From assembly GCF_000143415.4 (NCBI RefSeq), contig NW_003314267.1:3679138-3743137 (forward strand): DNA of 64,000 bases, in the 5' to 3' direction. Below, in pieces: positions 56,915 to 64,000 of this stretch. Position 1 is the stretch's first letter; every line of letters starts with the position of its first letter. A model generated the notes under the pieces. The model worked only from the letters and a program-made list of their open reading frames with translations, searched no databases and had not been told where the DNA came from. Made by a program: the position numbers and the translations under genes. This DNA comes from Selaginella moellendorffii. Its lineage: Eukaryota; Plantae; Lycopodiophyta.

Positions 56915-59159
56915 CTAGCGTATTTCACAAGGGACATGAAAGCTCCGTCCATGACATATCTCTTCGAGATTTTCGCCTGCATACGAGATCAAAGGACTGA
57001 CCTCCACTCCTGCAGGATATTCAAGTTCAAGAGACAAACTAAATACCAGTTAATCCATCCATACCAGTTAAATGTAATGGCACCGAGTGTAGAATGAAAC
57101 CTCCCGCTGCTACCACCCAGCGCATGTGGAGGCGAAGAAGTAACAATCGAGCCGATTCTGGCGAGTCCACTCCACTCGCATTCTTCACCGGAGCAAACTC
57201 TTCCTCTCTTACAACCTGCTAAAACAAGAATTTGAAAACTAGCTAGCAACCAATCCAGCATACCTCGAAAATCGCCACCGATGGAGCATATGGAAACGCA
57301 TCGAATATATACTGCTCTAATTTGATGCCTTGGACAGGCCCGTCCGCGGAAGGTATTGTCTTCTCAGCAACATGATATCTGCAACGTCAGGAGTGAGATC
57401 CAATCATAAAAGAAGAAACTTGAGTTCCAGGAGCTACTTACATGCTGTCTTGCTCCAATTCATCCGTCACTGCAGCCAAAAACTCTAAGGAGTACATTTG
57501 CATACAAATCTGAAAAAATAGAAGAGTTGGAAGCATGCGAAAGAAAAAAGCACGTCTTACATTGCTCCATTTAAAGTTCAATCGTCCTGTCTCTTGGTTG
57601 ACCGAGGAAGCGAGAGCAGGATCCAGCTCACTGTATTCCAAGACGGCCACAGGTCCGTTCTTTGCACGTCTCACGAAGACTCCAACTCTTTCTTGAGGAT
57701 ACAACTATGAAAACACGCATAGGTGACTTTGGAAGAAAGGGGGAAATTTAAAAAATCAAATATATACCTTCTTCACAGCTTTGGCAGCACAGCTGACGTT
57801 TCTATCGATGCAGTAGCCTAGAAAGAGTGGGTCTGCTACCCGAACCTGTAAAGAAAGTCTATGAATCTAACGAAGTTTACTGATTTTTTTTAAACGAAAT
57901 CGTACCAGAGCATTGTCTACACTGAAACAATCCACGTAATGAATGCCTCTCTTGGCCATATCTTCCAAATGGCCCGAGGTCTTCAAAGCTGTAAAAGTAT
58001 ACCCATTAACTTCAGTCGGAGTAAGATAGAAGTCATAACGCGTACCTGCGTAGACTCCACCATTTCCGTCTGGGGCCCTTGAAATCTGCAATGCCAGCTA
58101 TGTGATGAAACACTTAGGCTTTCAACAGCTTATCAACACCTTACAGGCAGATTCCATGATAATTTTCCCTTCCTTCGTCACGCAAGGAAGCGTCCCTTGT
58201 TGAAAGAAGATTACCTGAAATGATACACGGTAAGCATCTTCCCTTTAGCACAGGAAAGTCGGATCAAACCTGTTGTGCTTCAAGACCAAAGTACTTTTTG
58301 GCTTCAAAGAATTGCCGAGTAGCGGTGTCTGTAAATGGACTCGTCATAATGTACCATGGGATCATGACTAGCCTTCCTGTGTATTTGATTTGGTTAGCCC
58401 AGAAGAACAGTTCTCAAGAACTCTTGCATACCTGAGCCAGCCCGATTCGAGGCTAGTTTTTGTATTCTCAAAATTCTCTCTGCCTGGAGCTGAAACAGTG
58501 ACTTTCCCGAAGGCAAACCGATATCTGTTCGAAGTGGAAATGGAAACTCGTAAGAAAAAGCCAGGGAATCGAGCGATAACTTACTAATGCATCCCTTTGG
58601 ATCATTACTACCCAAGCGTGTGCCCTGCAAGAAAATGGCCAAGGTTTCCAGGCAACAAGACAAGGAATTTGAGGATACCTGGCCCCCTGACAATAGCAGC
58701 ACCGCCAGTTTTCCTTCGGAGATCGCCTTCAAGCCCAATCCCCACCATCTTTCCCTTTCCTGGGCAGTCCTTTCTTCAATACAAGACACCGACGCTTCTG
58801 CTAGCGGCACTGGATTTCTCAGAGAATCTCCTGACAAAACAAAGCGTTTAAGCTTGGACCAAAAGCGAGACCGCGAAGAAAAAATTCCTCCTAGATATCT
58901 CACCGCGCTGTAGTGTCTTCCTCGCAATCCGCGAGACGCGAGGAAGATCTACCGCCTGCAAGCAGAGATTTCTCCAGATCAAGCCACAAATTGCCACATT
59001 TCCCACCTCCAATTCGCAGATCAGCTCGTCGCGCTCCACCTCGTTCAGCTCCTTCCAGCGCCCCAGCGTGTGCTCCTGCCCGAAATCCTTGAGCCGCTCC
59101 AGGAACGCCTGTGGCGGGAGCATCGATTCGCCGCCAGCTTCGAGCAACGCCTCTCCCAT
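56915..59159 (-). CDS. UAP1: UDP-N-acetylglucosamine pyrophosphorylase
   Basis: LLSGGQGTRLG..DPKG, IGLPSGKSLFQLQAERI, WYIMTSPFT, APDGNGGVY, VDNALV, LEQYIFDAFPYA, EVSPLISYAGENL. Confidence 0.95.
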
Positions 59160-59458
59160 GGCGCCGTGATCTCTAAAACCCTACCGGTCCTCCAAGGCAC
59201 ACCTTATATATGCGAAGAAAAAAAAACTACTGGCCCGAGAGAAAGCATATTCAATGGATGCTCTCTTACGACAGTGTTAATGAACGGATCTCACTTTGCT
59301 CCACGTACTCCGGATATAGAAAAATTCCAAAAACTCTTTGTTCTAACCATGAGCTTCTTCCGTATTGACAAATCATCGAGTTCTTCACGGAATCATCGAG
59401 TTCTTCCCAGTTCTTCACGGAAAAATCAATGCGAGGAGCTCAGCGTCTTCACTTGCGA

Positions 59459-61370
59459 TTAATCTGGAAGAAGCCAGTCAAAAAATCCCACCTTGGTATA
59501 CTTCCTTCCTTTTCCATACTCGATCAAAACGCTCCAGAGTTCCAGCACGCTCCACTTTTGTTCTAAAATCCAGTCGGCTATTCTCTGGAGCTTCGTGGTA
59601 CGTGGATCTTTGAATGTGTAGTACAACAGGAAGGGGCGGCCAGCCTGCAAAGGTTTCTCATCGTCCCAAAGCATGAATTTTTGCGACATAGAGATGCTTA
59701 CCTCCGAGGCAGCCAGCCACTGGAGCATGCTCTTAACTTCATGGTCCCCGCCAAAGACCCCACATCCCCAGTTGCCGGTGGCTACTCCACGAGCGCTTTC
59801 ACTCGAGCCACCGCATTGAATCGACTGATGGACGAGAAAGCCACAGTATGCCTTGTTAAGTTCCCTGGTACAGTAAAAAGTTCAAGGAAAAAAAAAAGAA
59901 AAGTCACAACGAAAAAGTATCGAAAACGAGAGCCTACCGCAGCATTAGCGCAGCGTCGAATTGTGCTTCTCCCGGAAACGGGAGAGCGTCAATGGCCACA
60001 ATGTGCGTTTCCTTTCGACCCCATGCATCTCTGGCTTTGTTGTCGAAGAACTTTCCAGCAAAACGAAAGCTCGAGGCATATCTATCGGGAAAATGAAATG
60101 GAAAAGAAGTTGGAACGCTTTCGTGGTAAGATAAACTTGGCGTACCCCTCATATCGATTGTAGCACTGCGTCCCGACTATTTCTATTGCTTCATTGTCTT
60201 GCATTGCCGGTAAGAAAAGCCTTCCAGCGATCAGTTCGGGATTGATTACGCATCTAATCTCCTCCTGTCACAATTGTTCACATAACTTTTAAACGTAGAG
60301 AAGTCTACCTGCAAGCATCCGGCGCCGAGTACACCACCACCTAAGACCCTGTTGGCGAAATCCACCTCCAAAACGGGAGTATCACTACCTTCTATAGTGC
60401 CATCTTCCATTACCTGAAAAGAAGAGAACAAGTTAAGGAACTGACAACGCTTGTGACTAAGACCAGTATTTGACACAGCGGTCTCGAGGAACTGCTCCAG
60501 AAAGAGAGAGGATCCTCCATCTCTTGTTCCAAAGACAACACCTTGCGCTCGTAAGAAATCATTCCTTGCGGTACGCTTTCACAAACAATCTGAAAGTAAT
60601 GCAACAAGCATATGATCTTGTGCTTGGCACTCTCTTCTCGATTCTCATCAACCAGTGCCCTGCAAAAAGCAACAGATAAACAGAAAGGAAAAAAAAACAA
60701 AGCCCGGTGTAACTTACATGAAGAGTTTATAGAAGTTTAAGTCGGGAAGATCCAATTTGTTCCTCTCTGCCGAAGGATACAAGCAGAAAAACCCGCACGC
60801 TAGAATCGATGCCACAAGCTCCTGGTGGTGATCTGCTGGCATAAGAGAATGAAGAACTCAAAGAAGAAAATGGATGAAATCTTTTACCTGGCTCAGCAAA
60901 ACCATGCCACTTTGTCCGGCGGGAAGAGCACGCAGCTGCAAAAAATCCAGTTGTGATGGAAAGCGATCGCTCACGCTGCCATCAATGTGATCCTTGACAA
61001 GCGCCGACAGCCTCAAGGCGAGCTGAGCCATCGCTGGCAGCAACGAGCCAAAGAATCCGCGACAGAAATCTTCTGGTACGAGCTGGAAGCCAGATTTTTT
61101 TGCACAACTGGATCAAGAATTTCGGCTTACCTCGCGGAAGAACAAGCCCATTCCTTGCACAGCCCTAGCCGGAAGCTTGGCATCTCTCATCCCGCCCCGG
61201 TGACGCATCTCCACGATGTAATCCAGCAGGGCCTCTCCGGACGAGACGCGGCTGATCGCCGGGCCCTGCGCAAGCTCCGAGAGCGCCATAGAAACGCCGA
61301 TCGGCCATTCCAGGACCTTGGACGCTTCATCCAGTGTGAGAGGCAACAAAGGCGCCATACCCATAGCCAT
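59459..61370 (-). CDS. PARG: Poly(ADP-ribose) glycohydrolase
   Basis: VDFANRVLGGGVLGAGCLQ|EEIR (GGG-X-QEE signature), INPELIAGRLFLP, IVAIDAL, VATGNWGCGVFGGD, LQWLAAS. Confidence 0.96.
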
Positions 61371-61444
61371 TAGGGCAACACACGTTCAACATTTGTTAAT
61401 ATAGAATATTCCCTAGCAATTTAAATTACCTTAGGGCTTGGGCG

Positions 61445-63573
61445 ATGGAGGCAGTGATAGTCGAGCCGCCGCAGGATGCGACTGTACATGCCGTGTGCTT
61501 GCCGGAACTGGGGAGAGTGCAGGAGCGAGTTGTGTTAATTTTCCATGTAGCTTATCCGAGCGTAATAGATATTCACCTCTATTCTGTGCATCTCCAACTT
61601 CTCAAGTTACGCCGATCTCGGCTCATGGATCACATTCGAGCATCTCTGGAGCTGTCAACGTTCGGTACTCCACGAGCTCTGGAGCTCGCATTCACAAAGT
61701 AAGAGTATGTGCATTGTACTTTTTCCAAAACATCGGTGGTTCGTTTGCAGGATGAATGAAGAGCTGCGGGCTGTGGTAGGAACATCAGATTGCTGGGTAT
61801 GTGGTGGTGATTACTGCTGTTGCTGTAAATGTTTGCTTTGGTTCTGGTTATAGGATTGGTGTGCGCAAAACAGGTCCTTGGTGGTGGTGCTTGGAGACGC
61901 GCATGTGTATGTGTTTGGCGAGGCCTTTGCGTCGGTGATGCTGTGCCGAAATGGGAAGGACGAGATGCTGACCCGTCCAAGTTCTCTCTACCGTCTCAAA
62001 AATGCTAGCCCCCCGCAAAGTAGCAGTGAACCTTTTTATTACCACAAGGTACTCACTCTTTTGTTGAAATTTGTTATTCTGGAAGCTTGGTGGACGCAGG
62101 AGCGGGTGACTACAGCAGACACCTATCTTCTCGTTGCATCGGCGCACCTGGGTTGTCACATGGATGGCGATTATACTAGCGTTTTCACCACTCGGATTGA
62201 CGCAATGGTGAGTATTTTATACTTTTGATCCTCAAACGAGCTTGTAATGTGCGAACTAGTACAGGGCCTCGAGGAAGCTTGCCGCCAGATTGCTGCAGGG
62301 ACCGATGAATGCAGGACGTTCGCACTAGTTCCTGTTGGAGAGCTGCTGCGACAGAAAGTGGCCAATGGAGAGGAAGACCCAATCGATTTGAATCCCGAGC
62401 CTGTGGACGAATCTGAATCTGAATCTGAATCTGAATCTGAAGATGAAGATGAGTTCGAAGACGAAACAGCGATGATAGAGTTATATGATGTTACACCCTG
62501 TGGTTTCCGCCCCCTAGGTACGTACAGGACATCAATTATAGCTATATGACCATATTACTGCTTTCAGTCAATGGGAACGCTCAAGTACCCGAACCCTTTA
62601 TCTGTTGCAATCCCGGACCTCCTAGGGACCCCTGCATAAAGGTGATGGACCTCAAGGTAATAATACTTCAAATTTCCCTCTTGTGGTTTTTTTTTCCAGA
62701 GTTCTTGGTTTGAGATTTAGTGGCTTTTGATCAGGAAAAGGACCTCAAGCTTGTTTGTAAAGTCGGCTCTTGCAAGTTTGTGATTAAAAGCGGGGACATA
62801 AAAGAGTGGTTTGTGGACGGAAGGAAGGACGCAATTGTAGTTCCTGTTGGAGGTCAGATACACAGAGGTAACGCAAAGGGGTATTTGGCATTTTGACATG
62901 AGCTTTTGTCTTTTCTTTTCTCTTCAGAAATAGGTTTTGCCACTGGGTCGAGCTTTACTGGCTTGGATATCATGTAAGTGTCTTTCCTTATTTCGTTTTC
63001 CACCTTTTAACTGACTCGTTTCTCAGCCCTTCAGGAGGACTGCCAGCACCTAAAATCATTATTACTAGAGGCCCAAAATACTTCAAAGACATGGAGACGG
63101 AAGCTGCCAAGCAACTTGGTCTCACTTATGAGTATGTCGGAGTGTGTAGCAAATTTGATACATTGTGCTTTTGCTACTACAGGAACGCTATAACATTTGC
63201 TCGCAAGAAAGGCGTGAAGCACATAGCGCTCCCAGCTATCTCGTGCGGATGTGGCGGGTTTGTTGCTCACACTTTACCTCTTGTATACTGAGTTCGCATT
63301 GTGTTTCAGGGTTCCTCTGGATAAAGCGGCACGGATTGCTGTGGAAAGCGTACAAAAGGCACTCAAAAGTGCTAAAGCGTCCATTGAGGTAAGCTGCCCT
63401 GGATTAGACATGCCTTTGTTATTCAGTGTTCGAAATTGTAGGTTCACTTTGTCATAAAGGACGAACCCGCCTGGAGAGTGTGGGTAGCTGCAACAGACCT
63501 CCTTGCATTTTGGAATTATGATCGCTACCTATCTTATCGGTGCAACAGACCTCCCTATCCAGTCCGTGAATGA
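61445..63573 (+). CDS. Fusion protein: degenerate PP2C-fold domain + acidic linker + degenerate MacroD-type macrodomain
   Basis: Phase-consistent GT-AG model with no stops. PP2C-like part: ALELAFTKMNEEL, LVVVLGDAHVYVFGEAFASVMLCRNGK, DTYLLVASAHL. Linker: (ES)5EDEDEFEDE. Macrodomain part: FVIKSGDIKEWFVDGRKDAIV, GGLPAPKIIITRGPKY, YENAITFARKKGVKHIALPAISCG, EVHFVI..W. Confidence 0.8.
62409..62438 (+). repeat. (GAATCT)5 coding microsatellite encoding an ES repeat
   Basis: Five exact hexamers in the acidic linker exon. Confidence 0.9.
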
Positions 63574-63649
63574 GAAGTAGAATAGTTACACCTGGTTTGT
63601 TTTGGCTTAAATTGGATTTAATAGATAAACTAGTCCAGTAAACTTTGCG

Positions 63650-64000
63650 CGTGATGATCTCCGGGCTGGGCTCCCGCGACGCGCAGCGCATCTTCTTGTC
63701 CGTGGATCTCAAGGGGCCGAGGCCGTGATGGCGGCGATGATCGAGTCATGCTGCGACGCCGCCGGGATCGCGAGCGCCCGCGCGACGGCAGCGCGAGAAG
63801 AGCTGGAGGCCAGGTTGAAGGAGAGGGACGAGGCCAACATCAGAAATTTTCGGTGATCTCTCGCGGTGCTTGCAACCACAGGAGAGTGATGGGGGGCTGA
63901 AGGTGGCGAGGGAGATCTCTCACCATTCCTACCTCAAGAAGAGGCAAGACAAGAAGCTGGAGGAGCTCAAGGACACACTCATCGACGAGGAGTTGCTGTT
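63650..64000 (+). pseudogene. Possible decayed PPR-like fragment
   Basis: GC-rich; MISGLGSRDAQRIF and AAMIESCC weakly resemble PPR helices; frames broken; runs to the window edge. Confidence 0.25.

Follow-up and report, generated by a model that had tools for sequence, protein, structure and literature searches.

The window analyzed here, a stretch of 64,000 nucleotides (nt) of nuclear DNA from the lycophyte Selaginella moellendorffii (contig NW_003314267.1, positions 3,679,138 to 3,743,137), carries close to its end a compact multi-exon gene on the plus strand. The encoded protein joins a domain predicted to have the fold of the PPM/PP2C phosphatases to a macrodomain through an acidic linker, and both of these modules appear to have lost most of the residues normally required for catalysis. 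The features of the locus are collected in Table 1.

Table 1. Positions, within the window, of the gene, its predicted modules and motifs, and the adjoining features.
Feature	Position	Strand	Remarks
Whole gene	61445-63573	+	ATG 61445, TGA 63573; 12 exons, 504 codons + TGA
Exon 1	61445-61698	+	
Exon 2	61751-61796	+	
Exon 3	61854-62048	+	
Exon 4	62100-62207	+	
Exon 5	62265-62517	+	
Exon 6	62568-62656	+	
Exon 7	62735-62867	+	
Exon 8	62928-62973	+	
Exon 9	63027-63131	+	
Exon 10	63183-63257	+	
Exon 11	63310-63388	+	
Exon 12	63442-63573	+	
Predicted N-terminal PPM/PP2C-fold domain lacking the canonical metal-binding set	61445-62357	+	residues 1-232; from fold, embedding, and weak profile matches
SAHL (equivalent of SDG)	62139-62150	+	
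TDEC (equivalent of DN, Asp retained)	near 62301-62312	+	
Acidic, probably disordered linker and Pro/Cys-rich pre-macro stretch	62358-62656	+	residues 233-315, split by intron 5
(GAATCT)5 microsatellite in exon 5	about 62409-62438	+	codes for a Glu-Ser repeat
Degenerate MacroD/YmdB-like macrodomain	62735-63498	+	residues 316-480, exons 7-12
GDI	62792-62800	+	
Shortened loop 1, VPVGGQ	62840-62857	+	
IIITRGP	63055-63075	+	
Loop 2, PAISCGCG	63232-63255	+	
C-terminal tail and stop	63499-63573	+	from alignment of 3' ends
PARG (poly(ADP-ribose) glycohydrolase), head-to-head	59459-61370	-	from RNA joints, Pfam, and reconstruction
AT-rich spacer between the divergent start codons	61371-61444		74 nt; RNA depth about 0.5 or less

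The gene was rebuilt from the letters of the window, and had been hidden from a bacterial-style list of open reading frames (ORFs) because local introns measure 44-78 nt. An initial annotation had proposed a multi-exon, in-phase ORF between the same ends; this was borne out, and every motif quoted in it was found in the sequence. Most of its exon boundaries also stood, except that exon 2 ends at 61796 rather than 61775 and exon 6 at 62656 rather than 62657, the one base too many in the latter being the reason why the literal join runs out of frame after 62657. The corrected join yields a coding sequence of 1515 nt and 504 amino acids (aa) with one stop, which is terminal, and all 11 introns (50-78 nt) follow the GT-AG rule. 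Positions 61775 and 61796 are both in-phase GT donors for exon 2. The joint from 61796 to 61854 is present in RNA, in records derived from paralogues (an L003-type contig of run X1 and one read of run X17), and the same donor is used by P0001, the database model of the window locus, which is 100% identical to the window over exon 3; the alternative at 61775 is without support. A small intron that had been suspected near 62049 is real, spanning 62049-62099 (51 nt, in frame), with its spliced joint in a contig of run X1.

Six further loci were fetched (L001 to L006), of which L001, taken from GCA_000143415.2, is the allele of the window copy and 97.9% identical to it over the whole gene. When the exons are projected on the genomic alignment, the window copy, the allele, and the two diverged paralogues L002 and L003 retain all 12 of them with their splice sites and an unbroken frame. 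Among these copies and L004, eight of ten exon indels are multiples of three, compared with four of 25 in introns. The exon join is therefore far beyond chance, as the shared intact frame and the frame-preserving indels demonstrate. Database searches were run exon by exon, through P0001 (aa 61-232 and 286-501 of the window locus), and through paralogue proteins; the joined 504-aa translation served for coordinates, for local BLAST against the fetched loci, and for the ratio of nonsynonymous to synonymous divergence (dN/dS, omega).

The N-terminal domain was modeled with AlphaFold2 (AF2) on residues 1-238 of P0012, the closest full-length paralogue, together with 10 family sequences, and not on the window copy itself. 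The model has a predicted local distance difference test score (pLDDT) of 45.9 and a predicted template modeling score (pTM) of 0.49, and its strands and helices follow the order known from PPM phosphatases. In a Foldseek search of the PDB, nearly all of its best 50 matches are PPM/PP2C structures, at marginal E-values. A VIA wide search of 48,161 representative chains, which is independent of Foldseek, gave PPM folds in all of the best 35 matches (Z 6.0-9.7, 156-201 residues aligned), unrelated folds coming in below Z 6. The PPM matches include PPM1H (Z 9.7), TAP38 (9.0), SidD (8.9), PPM1K, PP2CA, SpoIIE, and TAB1. The ESM Atlas features of residues 1-240 of the paralogue P0011 score 0.95 to clusters of PPM-type phosphatases, and an Atlas shape search returns plant PP2C clusters with template modeling (TM) scores of 0.52-0.56; exon 3 alone gave scores of at most 0.79 and was uninformative. 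The modeling and embedding results indicate with good probability that the domain has a PPM fold, whose homology to the phosphatases would be either remote or strongly eroded. This PPM-like nature is absent from public annotation.

For the comparison of motifs, an alignment of 20 PP2C sequences (A3) was used, consisting of relatives of a canonical PP2C that adjoins P0011. In the weak hhalign match between the family and A3, motif 8 (ASDG/ASRH) and motif 11 (GSxDN/GS/T-D-D/E-C) are aligned in order, and hmmsearch adds a colinear helix/GsTa/GDSR block (E 0.0025-0.011 at Z=1, that is, in a search space of one sequence), in which the Asp of the GDSR block corresponds to Glu. At motif 8, LASDG aligns with VASRH, which reads VASAH in the window copy; across the family the Asp has become Arg or Ala, and the Gly has become His in all members. 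At motif 11, where the alignment is weak, GSSDN is paired with G(S/T)D(D/E)C, which is GTDEC in the window copy with the Asp at residue 215. Motif 2 (DGHGG) does not occur within aa 1-100, and by-eye placement on the secondary structure of the model suggests that IFHVAYP, on the predicted second strand, may occupy its place. These results agree with the earlier claim that the metal motifs of PP2Cs are lost, as DGHGG is missing and the Asp of SDG is replaced. Judged from its motifs, the domain is likely to be catalytically dead as a phosphatase; it is called likely, short of proven, because the Asp of the DN motif is kept and a conserved H-x3-H-x-D-x-D cluster stands in the family at the expected place of SDG.

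A derivation of the domain from the canonical PP2C next to P0011 was considered and rejected, as hhalign gives it a probability of 0.1%. This neighboring gene (L003:6760-7701, plus strand) lies 590 nt downstream of the paralogue and encodes 313 aa; its set of metal-binding motifs is complete, and its N-terminus is hydrophobic and resembles a signal peptide. The gene is intronless, which is unusual in an intron-rich genome.

The acidic linker that follows has a low-complexity match to Trypan_PARP (E 0.007) as its sole Pfam hit. Its length varies among the copies through in-frame indels of 3-57 nt, and the window copy and its allele have an in-frame deletion of 48 nt at 62368 relative to the paralogues. 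The proposed order of a PP2C-like domain, an acidic linker, and a macrodomain is thus the one found.

By sequence, the identity of the C-terminal module as a macrodomain is certain. Residues 273-345 of P0001 match the Pfam family Macro (PF01661) with 55.8 bits (cut-off 22; E 5.3e-15), a match that spans only the last 73 positions (46-118 of 118) of the profile, and the 24 aa of exon 10 alone are recognized in the exon-by-exon search (E 8e-4). The family profile finds 55 macro chains in the PDB, the best being macroH2A1.1 (4.8e-9) and others including DR_2288 and MacroD types, all through the second half of the domain only. The AF2 model of the macro module is likewise confident in the second half alone, its first half having a pLDDT below 50; with this model Foldseek finds macro folds across about 100 residues. 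Nearly the whole domain is covered by a BLASTP alignment to P0149, a YmdB-type protein of 180 aa from Planctomycetota (34% identity over 173 columns, E 5e-20, 20 gap positions), in which residues 9-163 of the macro query correspond to residues 4-174.

Compared with P0149, about 20 residues are absent between the GDI strand and the IIITRGP strand. The GDI strand, which bears the adenine-contacting Asp, is matched by the GDI of P0149 and does not vary within the family. The stretch aligned with loop 1 (FVDGRKDAIV--VPVGGQIHR) has neither the Asn pair of NAAN, nor the Gly run, nor the Asp that precedes IH(R), and the helix after it is shorter by 7-11 residues, with a register that is ambiguous between BLASTP and MAFFT. 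In loop 2, ISCGCGGVP aligns with ISTGVYRFP, the loop thus remaining rich in Gly but without its aromatic residue; in some paralogues it reads ILCRYGGFP. The catalytic loop had been described as eroded in the initial annotation, and the absence of NAAN, GGGG, and the Asp in this alignment shows the same. On the evidence of its residues, the domain is full in extent, with the catalytic Asn/Gly-rich loop gone and the glycines of loop 2 kept, and it belongs to the macro superfamily by profile score while not being a MacroD-type hydrolase by motif.

The gene is a member of a family present at no fewer than four loci, with members detected only in S. moellendorffii: a word search returned 13 proteins, all from this species, to which cluster look-ups add tandem copies. 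No second copy was found within the window by tblastn. L002 and L006 form a tandem array with GDSL lipase genes in between, and RMI1 is found close to L004 and L005. Upstream of L003 stands an aldo-keto reductase gene, and downstream of it the intronless canonical PP2C followed by a DEAH helicase gene. A partial extra copy (L002:6296-6970; exons 9-12, 84% identical) stands directly behind the full paralogue in the GDSL lipase array. The databases name the members either 'Macro domain-containing protein' (UniProt) or 'uncharacterized protein'. The claim of a novel architecture stands in that no PP2C-macro fusion was found in the literature searched, and falls in that the gene is not unique, but belongs to a multi-copy family already held by UniProt under the former name.

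The family tree is nearly a star of four locus lineages, unrooted and with no outgroup, and the mean column identity is 63%. The family is taken to be young because synonymous and intron divergence among the loci amounts to 0.13-0.24; the window copy differs by about 13% from its nearest paralogue in introns. Homology with the paralogues sets in only some 5 nt ahead of the ATG (61445) and stops about 9 nt before the TGA of the window copy, the other copies being about 10 codons longer. More generally, the dispersed paralogues are about 85% identical, introns included, with a sharp onset of similarity some 5 nt ahead of the start codon and an end at the stop codon or slightly beyond it. By its sequence limits, the duplicated or homogenised unit coincides almost exactly with the coding region; it may have come about through gene conversion confined to the gene, or through the unit having been captured and transposed.

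Selection was assessed from Nei-Gojobori counts pooled over two phylogenetically independent pairs, the window copy with L002 and L003 with L004. Omega is 0.38 in the N-terminal domain (P 5.5e-6) and 0.33 in the first part of the macrodomain, aa 316-375 (P 0.01). It is 0.90 in the linker, 0.88 in the second part of the macrodomain (aa 376-480), and 1.18 in the tail, none of the three being significant. These values indicate that selection keeps the N-terminal domain and the first macro part, and that the linker and the second macro half evolve near neutrality. An omega near 1 accompanied by disruptions, which the initial annotation had named as evidence against its reading, is accordingly the case in a portion of the macro module and among some of the copies, but neither in the N-terminal domain nor in the frame of the window copy.

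Transcription was followed in four RNA runs placed on positions 59000-64000 with the repeat at 62402-62458 masked, of which X1 consists of Logan contigs and X15 to X17 of raw reads. Joints are seen for introns 1, 2, 3, 4, 7, 8, and 9. The raw reads reach a depth of about 1 on the gene and come from plus-strand RNA, because their orientation is opposite to that of the minus-strand PARG reads. They carry the letters of L002/L006 at 15 of 16 variant positions, and their loose end at 62370 encodes a linker insert found only in paralogues, so that they show the expression and splicing of paralogues and were rejected as proof of expression of the window copy. The X1 contigs, on the other hand, include letters unique to the window copy or common to its allele (61660G with 61662T, and 62318G with 62325C) and one unique to L001 (61898T), and these haplotype-specific contigs contain the spliced joints of introns 1 and 4. 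Contigs that match the window at 95% identity or more contain the joints of introns 3, 8, and 9, and at the last two the known paralogues fall below 90%. The haplotype-specific letters of X1 thus indicate that the window locus and its allele are transcribed and spliced, at a depth of 4-5 against 18.6 for PARG. A run from 2013 labeled as another organism (X5) holds 10% of the 31-mers of the gene, and may represent a close relative or a differently labeled S. moellendorffii sample.

Taken together, this gene is an intact, weakly transcribed member of its family, and it is moderately probable that neither module is a conventional enzyme and that the product, if it does anything, is a binding or scaffold protein. 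In the mechanism proposed, no conventional catalysis would be performed by either module, and the protein would act, if at all, through binding or scaffolding. The PPM-like domain, as the module under selection, would probably offer a protein- or phosphoprotein-binding surface in the manner of TAB1. The macro-like module would retain at most a weakened contact with a nucleotide or ADP-ribose, through the GDI strand and the Gly-rich loop 2. The window copy itself may stem from a burst of DNA-level duplication that landed it 74 nt from the PARG start codon. The further suggestion of the initial annotation, an 'effector decoy' linking phospho- and ADP-ribose signaling, is not supported.

Several known systems resemble parts of this protein. 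TAB1 also uses a PPM α-β-β-α sandwich without a working metal center as a binding scaffold, and its structures are among the matches (2j4o at Z 8.1 and 5nzz at Z 7.9 in VIA, 2pop in Foldseek). However, TAB1 is an animal protein of about 370 aa that has no macrodomain and is found by PP2C sequence profiles, whereas the spikemoss domain has about 230 aa, lacks the flap region, and has no Pfam match. With the PP2C/PPM phosphatases (PPM1K, ABI1, TAP38, SpoIIE, tPphA) the domain shares the order of secondary structures, the fold, and the Asp of the last motif. Contrary to the canonical members, it has no DGHGG, bears Arg or Ala for the Asp of motif 8, and gives no significant profile match.

The best sequence relatives of the macrodomain are the O-acetyl-ADP-ribose deacetylases of the MacroD/YmdB type, such as E. 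coli YmdB and human MacroD1/2. The GDI strand, the strand equivalent to HTVGP, and the C-terminal helices of these enzymes are all in the spikemoss domain, as apparently is the ISxGxxG-P loop 2; the domain differs in lacking about 20 residues, the Asn of NAAN, the GGGG loop, and the catalytic Asp, and in sitting behind a PPM-like domain. The best PDB profile and Foldseek matches are to macroH2A1.1 and GDAP2 (7ny6, 4.8e-9; 1yd9, 9.4e-5; 4uml), whose macro modules have no hydrolase activity and serve as binding domains in larger proteins. Their fusion partners, a histone fold and CRAL-TRIO, are different, and macroH2A1.1 has a full-length loop 1 and binds ADP-ribose; in the spikemoss macrodomain loop 1 is truncated and the binding of ADP-ribose is putative. 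A literature search found no description of a PP2C-macro fusion and nothing relevant on Selaginella macrodomains, and the combination of PPM and macro modules is apparently undescribed. By analogy, its mode of working would be most like that of a pseudophosphatase scaffold such as TAB1, with a macro module of the reader type (macroH2A, GDAP2) or a vestigial one.

A number of observations weigh against this interpretation. The PP2C families of Pfam (PF00481, PF13672, PF07228) give no match at E <= 1 with exon 3 or with full-length paralogues, the N-domain family profile has no match among PDB sequences at E <= 10, and the hhalign comparison with A3 reaches a non-significant probability of 8.8%; a phmmer search with exon 3 against 1.84 billion representatives also returned family members alone and no PP2C. 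Both AF2 models have low confidence (pLDDT 46 and 44), that of the N-terminal domain representing a paralogue about 84% identical to the window copy over that domain. The PP2C-like half of the initial annotation is upheld, accordingly, by a low-confidence model (pLDDT 46) and an embedding search, but not by Pfam or PDB profiles; the structural comparison it had called for yields PPM folds for the N-terminal model and macro folds for the C-terminal one, with the same low confidence. Given the H-x3-H-x-D-x-D cluster and the retention of the last Asp, a remodeled metal site is conceivable. Omega values of 0.9-1.2 in the second half of the macrodomain, the linker, and the tail imply that the macro module may be vestigial. 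Three of the copies are affected by lesions: exon 1 is shortened by a deletion of 11 nt in L004, where ACG also replaces the ATG, and by one of 8 nt in L006a, and L005 lacks some splice sites and carries several indels that break the frame. Finally, expression is very low, all placed raw reads of three runs carry paralogue letters, and over 62507-62734 the RNA depth is 0 in the four runs, with the joints between exons 5 and 6 and between exons 6 and 7 not seen.

Many of these observations would also be expected of a young duplicate without function, intact yet effectively neutral and nearly silent, which is heading to become a pseudogene in a birth-and-death turnover. The X1 depth of about 4-5 with no locus-specific reads in X15 to X17, the broken or damaged state of L005, L006a, and L004, the truncated 3' end and the 48-nt linker deletion of the window copy, and the regions with omega near 1 all fit such a fate, as does the comparison of the window copy with its allele, where an omega of 0.46 derived from only 28 changes is indistinguishable from 1. 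It is nevertheless an unlikely account, since neither haplotype has lost any of the 22 splice sites or the 504-codon frame despite an intron divergence of about 13%, exon indels keep the frame, and the constraint on the N-terminal domain is measured in independent pairs that include the window copy.

In a second alternative, the PPM fold binds metal through a new His/Asp cluster and, with the macro module, removes a nucleotide-type modification such as ADP-ribose or AMP. SidD and Lem3 are PPM-fold enzymes that remove AMP and phosphocholine, respectively. SidD is among the best structural matches of the domain (201 residues, root-mean-square deviation 3.7), H181, H185, D187, D189, and D215 are nearly invariant in the family, the last of the PPM motifs retains its Asp, the constrained parts are the N-terminal domain and the first part of the macrodomain, and a PARG gene lies next door. 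The family is so shallow, however, that invariance says little, and the ligands of motif 1, motif 2, and SDG are absent. The model is too poor for the placement of side chains, the macro loop that positions the distal ribose is truncated, and the adjacency to PARG is not common to the paralogues. A remodeled active enzyme is consequently rather improbable. Its most elaborate form, in which the rebuilt PPM site and the trimmed macrodomain as substrate recognizer constitute a new ADP-ribosyl or nucleotidyl eraser sharing its promoter region with PARG, is a distant prospect.

The PARG gene itself is canonical and encodes 483 aa when the intron at 60822-60887 is removed, with the intact signature motifs GGG..QEE and GNWGCGVFGGD, and its single exons match PARG_cat_C (3.8e-19) and PARG_cat_N (3.1e-6) in Pfam; RNA depth is about 10, on the minus strand. 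The acceptor side of this intron has two forms (60718-60887, minus strand, PARG exon 3 and intron). The 66-nt form, 60822-60887, is seen in three reads of X16 and gives the full 483 aa, and the 55-nt form, 60833-60887, is seen in six reads and in a 1179-nt contig of X1 and throws translation out of frame, so that it ends at codon 155. As the 55-nt form has more reads and an early stop, the apparently commoner PARG isoform would be unproductive. A second 11-nt alternative exists at 60254/60265-60308.

The 74-nt spacer is presumably a shared bidirectional promoter region, and the two genes could therefore form an ADP-ribose module in which PARG is the eraser and the fusion protein its reader or regulator. 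In its favor, 74 nt separate the two oppositely oriented start codons, the second haplotype shows the same head-to-head layout, both proteins have macro-type folds, and by a rough estimate the chance landing of one of a few dispersed copies beside PARG is a priori unlikely. Yet PARG adjoins the gene only at the window locus and its allele L001, and at none of L002 to L006. The neighbors at the other loci are a GDSL lipase, an aldo-keto reductase and PP2C, or an isochorismatase and RMI1, and PARG as a conserved partner was rejected on this ground. Moreover, homology to the paralogues extends no further than about 5 nt upstream of the ATG, which implies that the window copy did not bring its own promoter, PARG has a depth of about 10 against about 0 for locus-specific reads in the same raw-read libraries, and the macro half is YmdB-like rather than PARG-like. 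A functional coupling is therefore very doubtful, and the adjacency is probably incidental.

That the halves come from different transcripts or from intron retention, with no fusion protein, is the least tenable reading together with the eraser: the RNA gap, a stop 10 codons past exon 5 upon retention of intron 5 (ORF 62247-62549), an in-frame Met at residue 311 just ahead of the macrodomain, and database models of the window locus that omit the linker would accommodate it, but the spliced frame has no stop between the halves, the last PPM strand and the linker share exon 5, phases match, the linker indels that distinguish the copies (48, 57, 33, 6, 3, and 24 nt) all preserve the frame, the two halves stay fused in independent paralogue annotations (among them RefSeq models of 507 and 475 aa), and contigs of both halves have similar depth in X1.

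Beyond the 3' end of the gene, the first part of a DHX16/PRP2-like DEAH helicase gene occupies the plus strand of the window at 63640-64000, and in the models P0001 and P0010 its first exons are wrongly joined to the macrodomain gene. A copy of this helicase start, 78.6% identical, lies downstream of the paralogue P0011 (L003:9375-9528).

The reach of the favored reading, an intact family member with a putative binding or scaffolding role, is limited by its being drawn from one species with weak expression and several decayed copies. If the fusion protein is made, it would represent an undescribed pairing of a PPM module, known from phospho-signaling, with a macro module, known from ADP-ribose signaling, both of them apparently pseudo-enzymes. 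The family, whose origin and expansion both lie within a single lycophyte lineage, offers a natural case of the birth of a multidomain protein in which selection retains one module while the other drifts.

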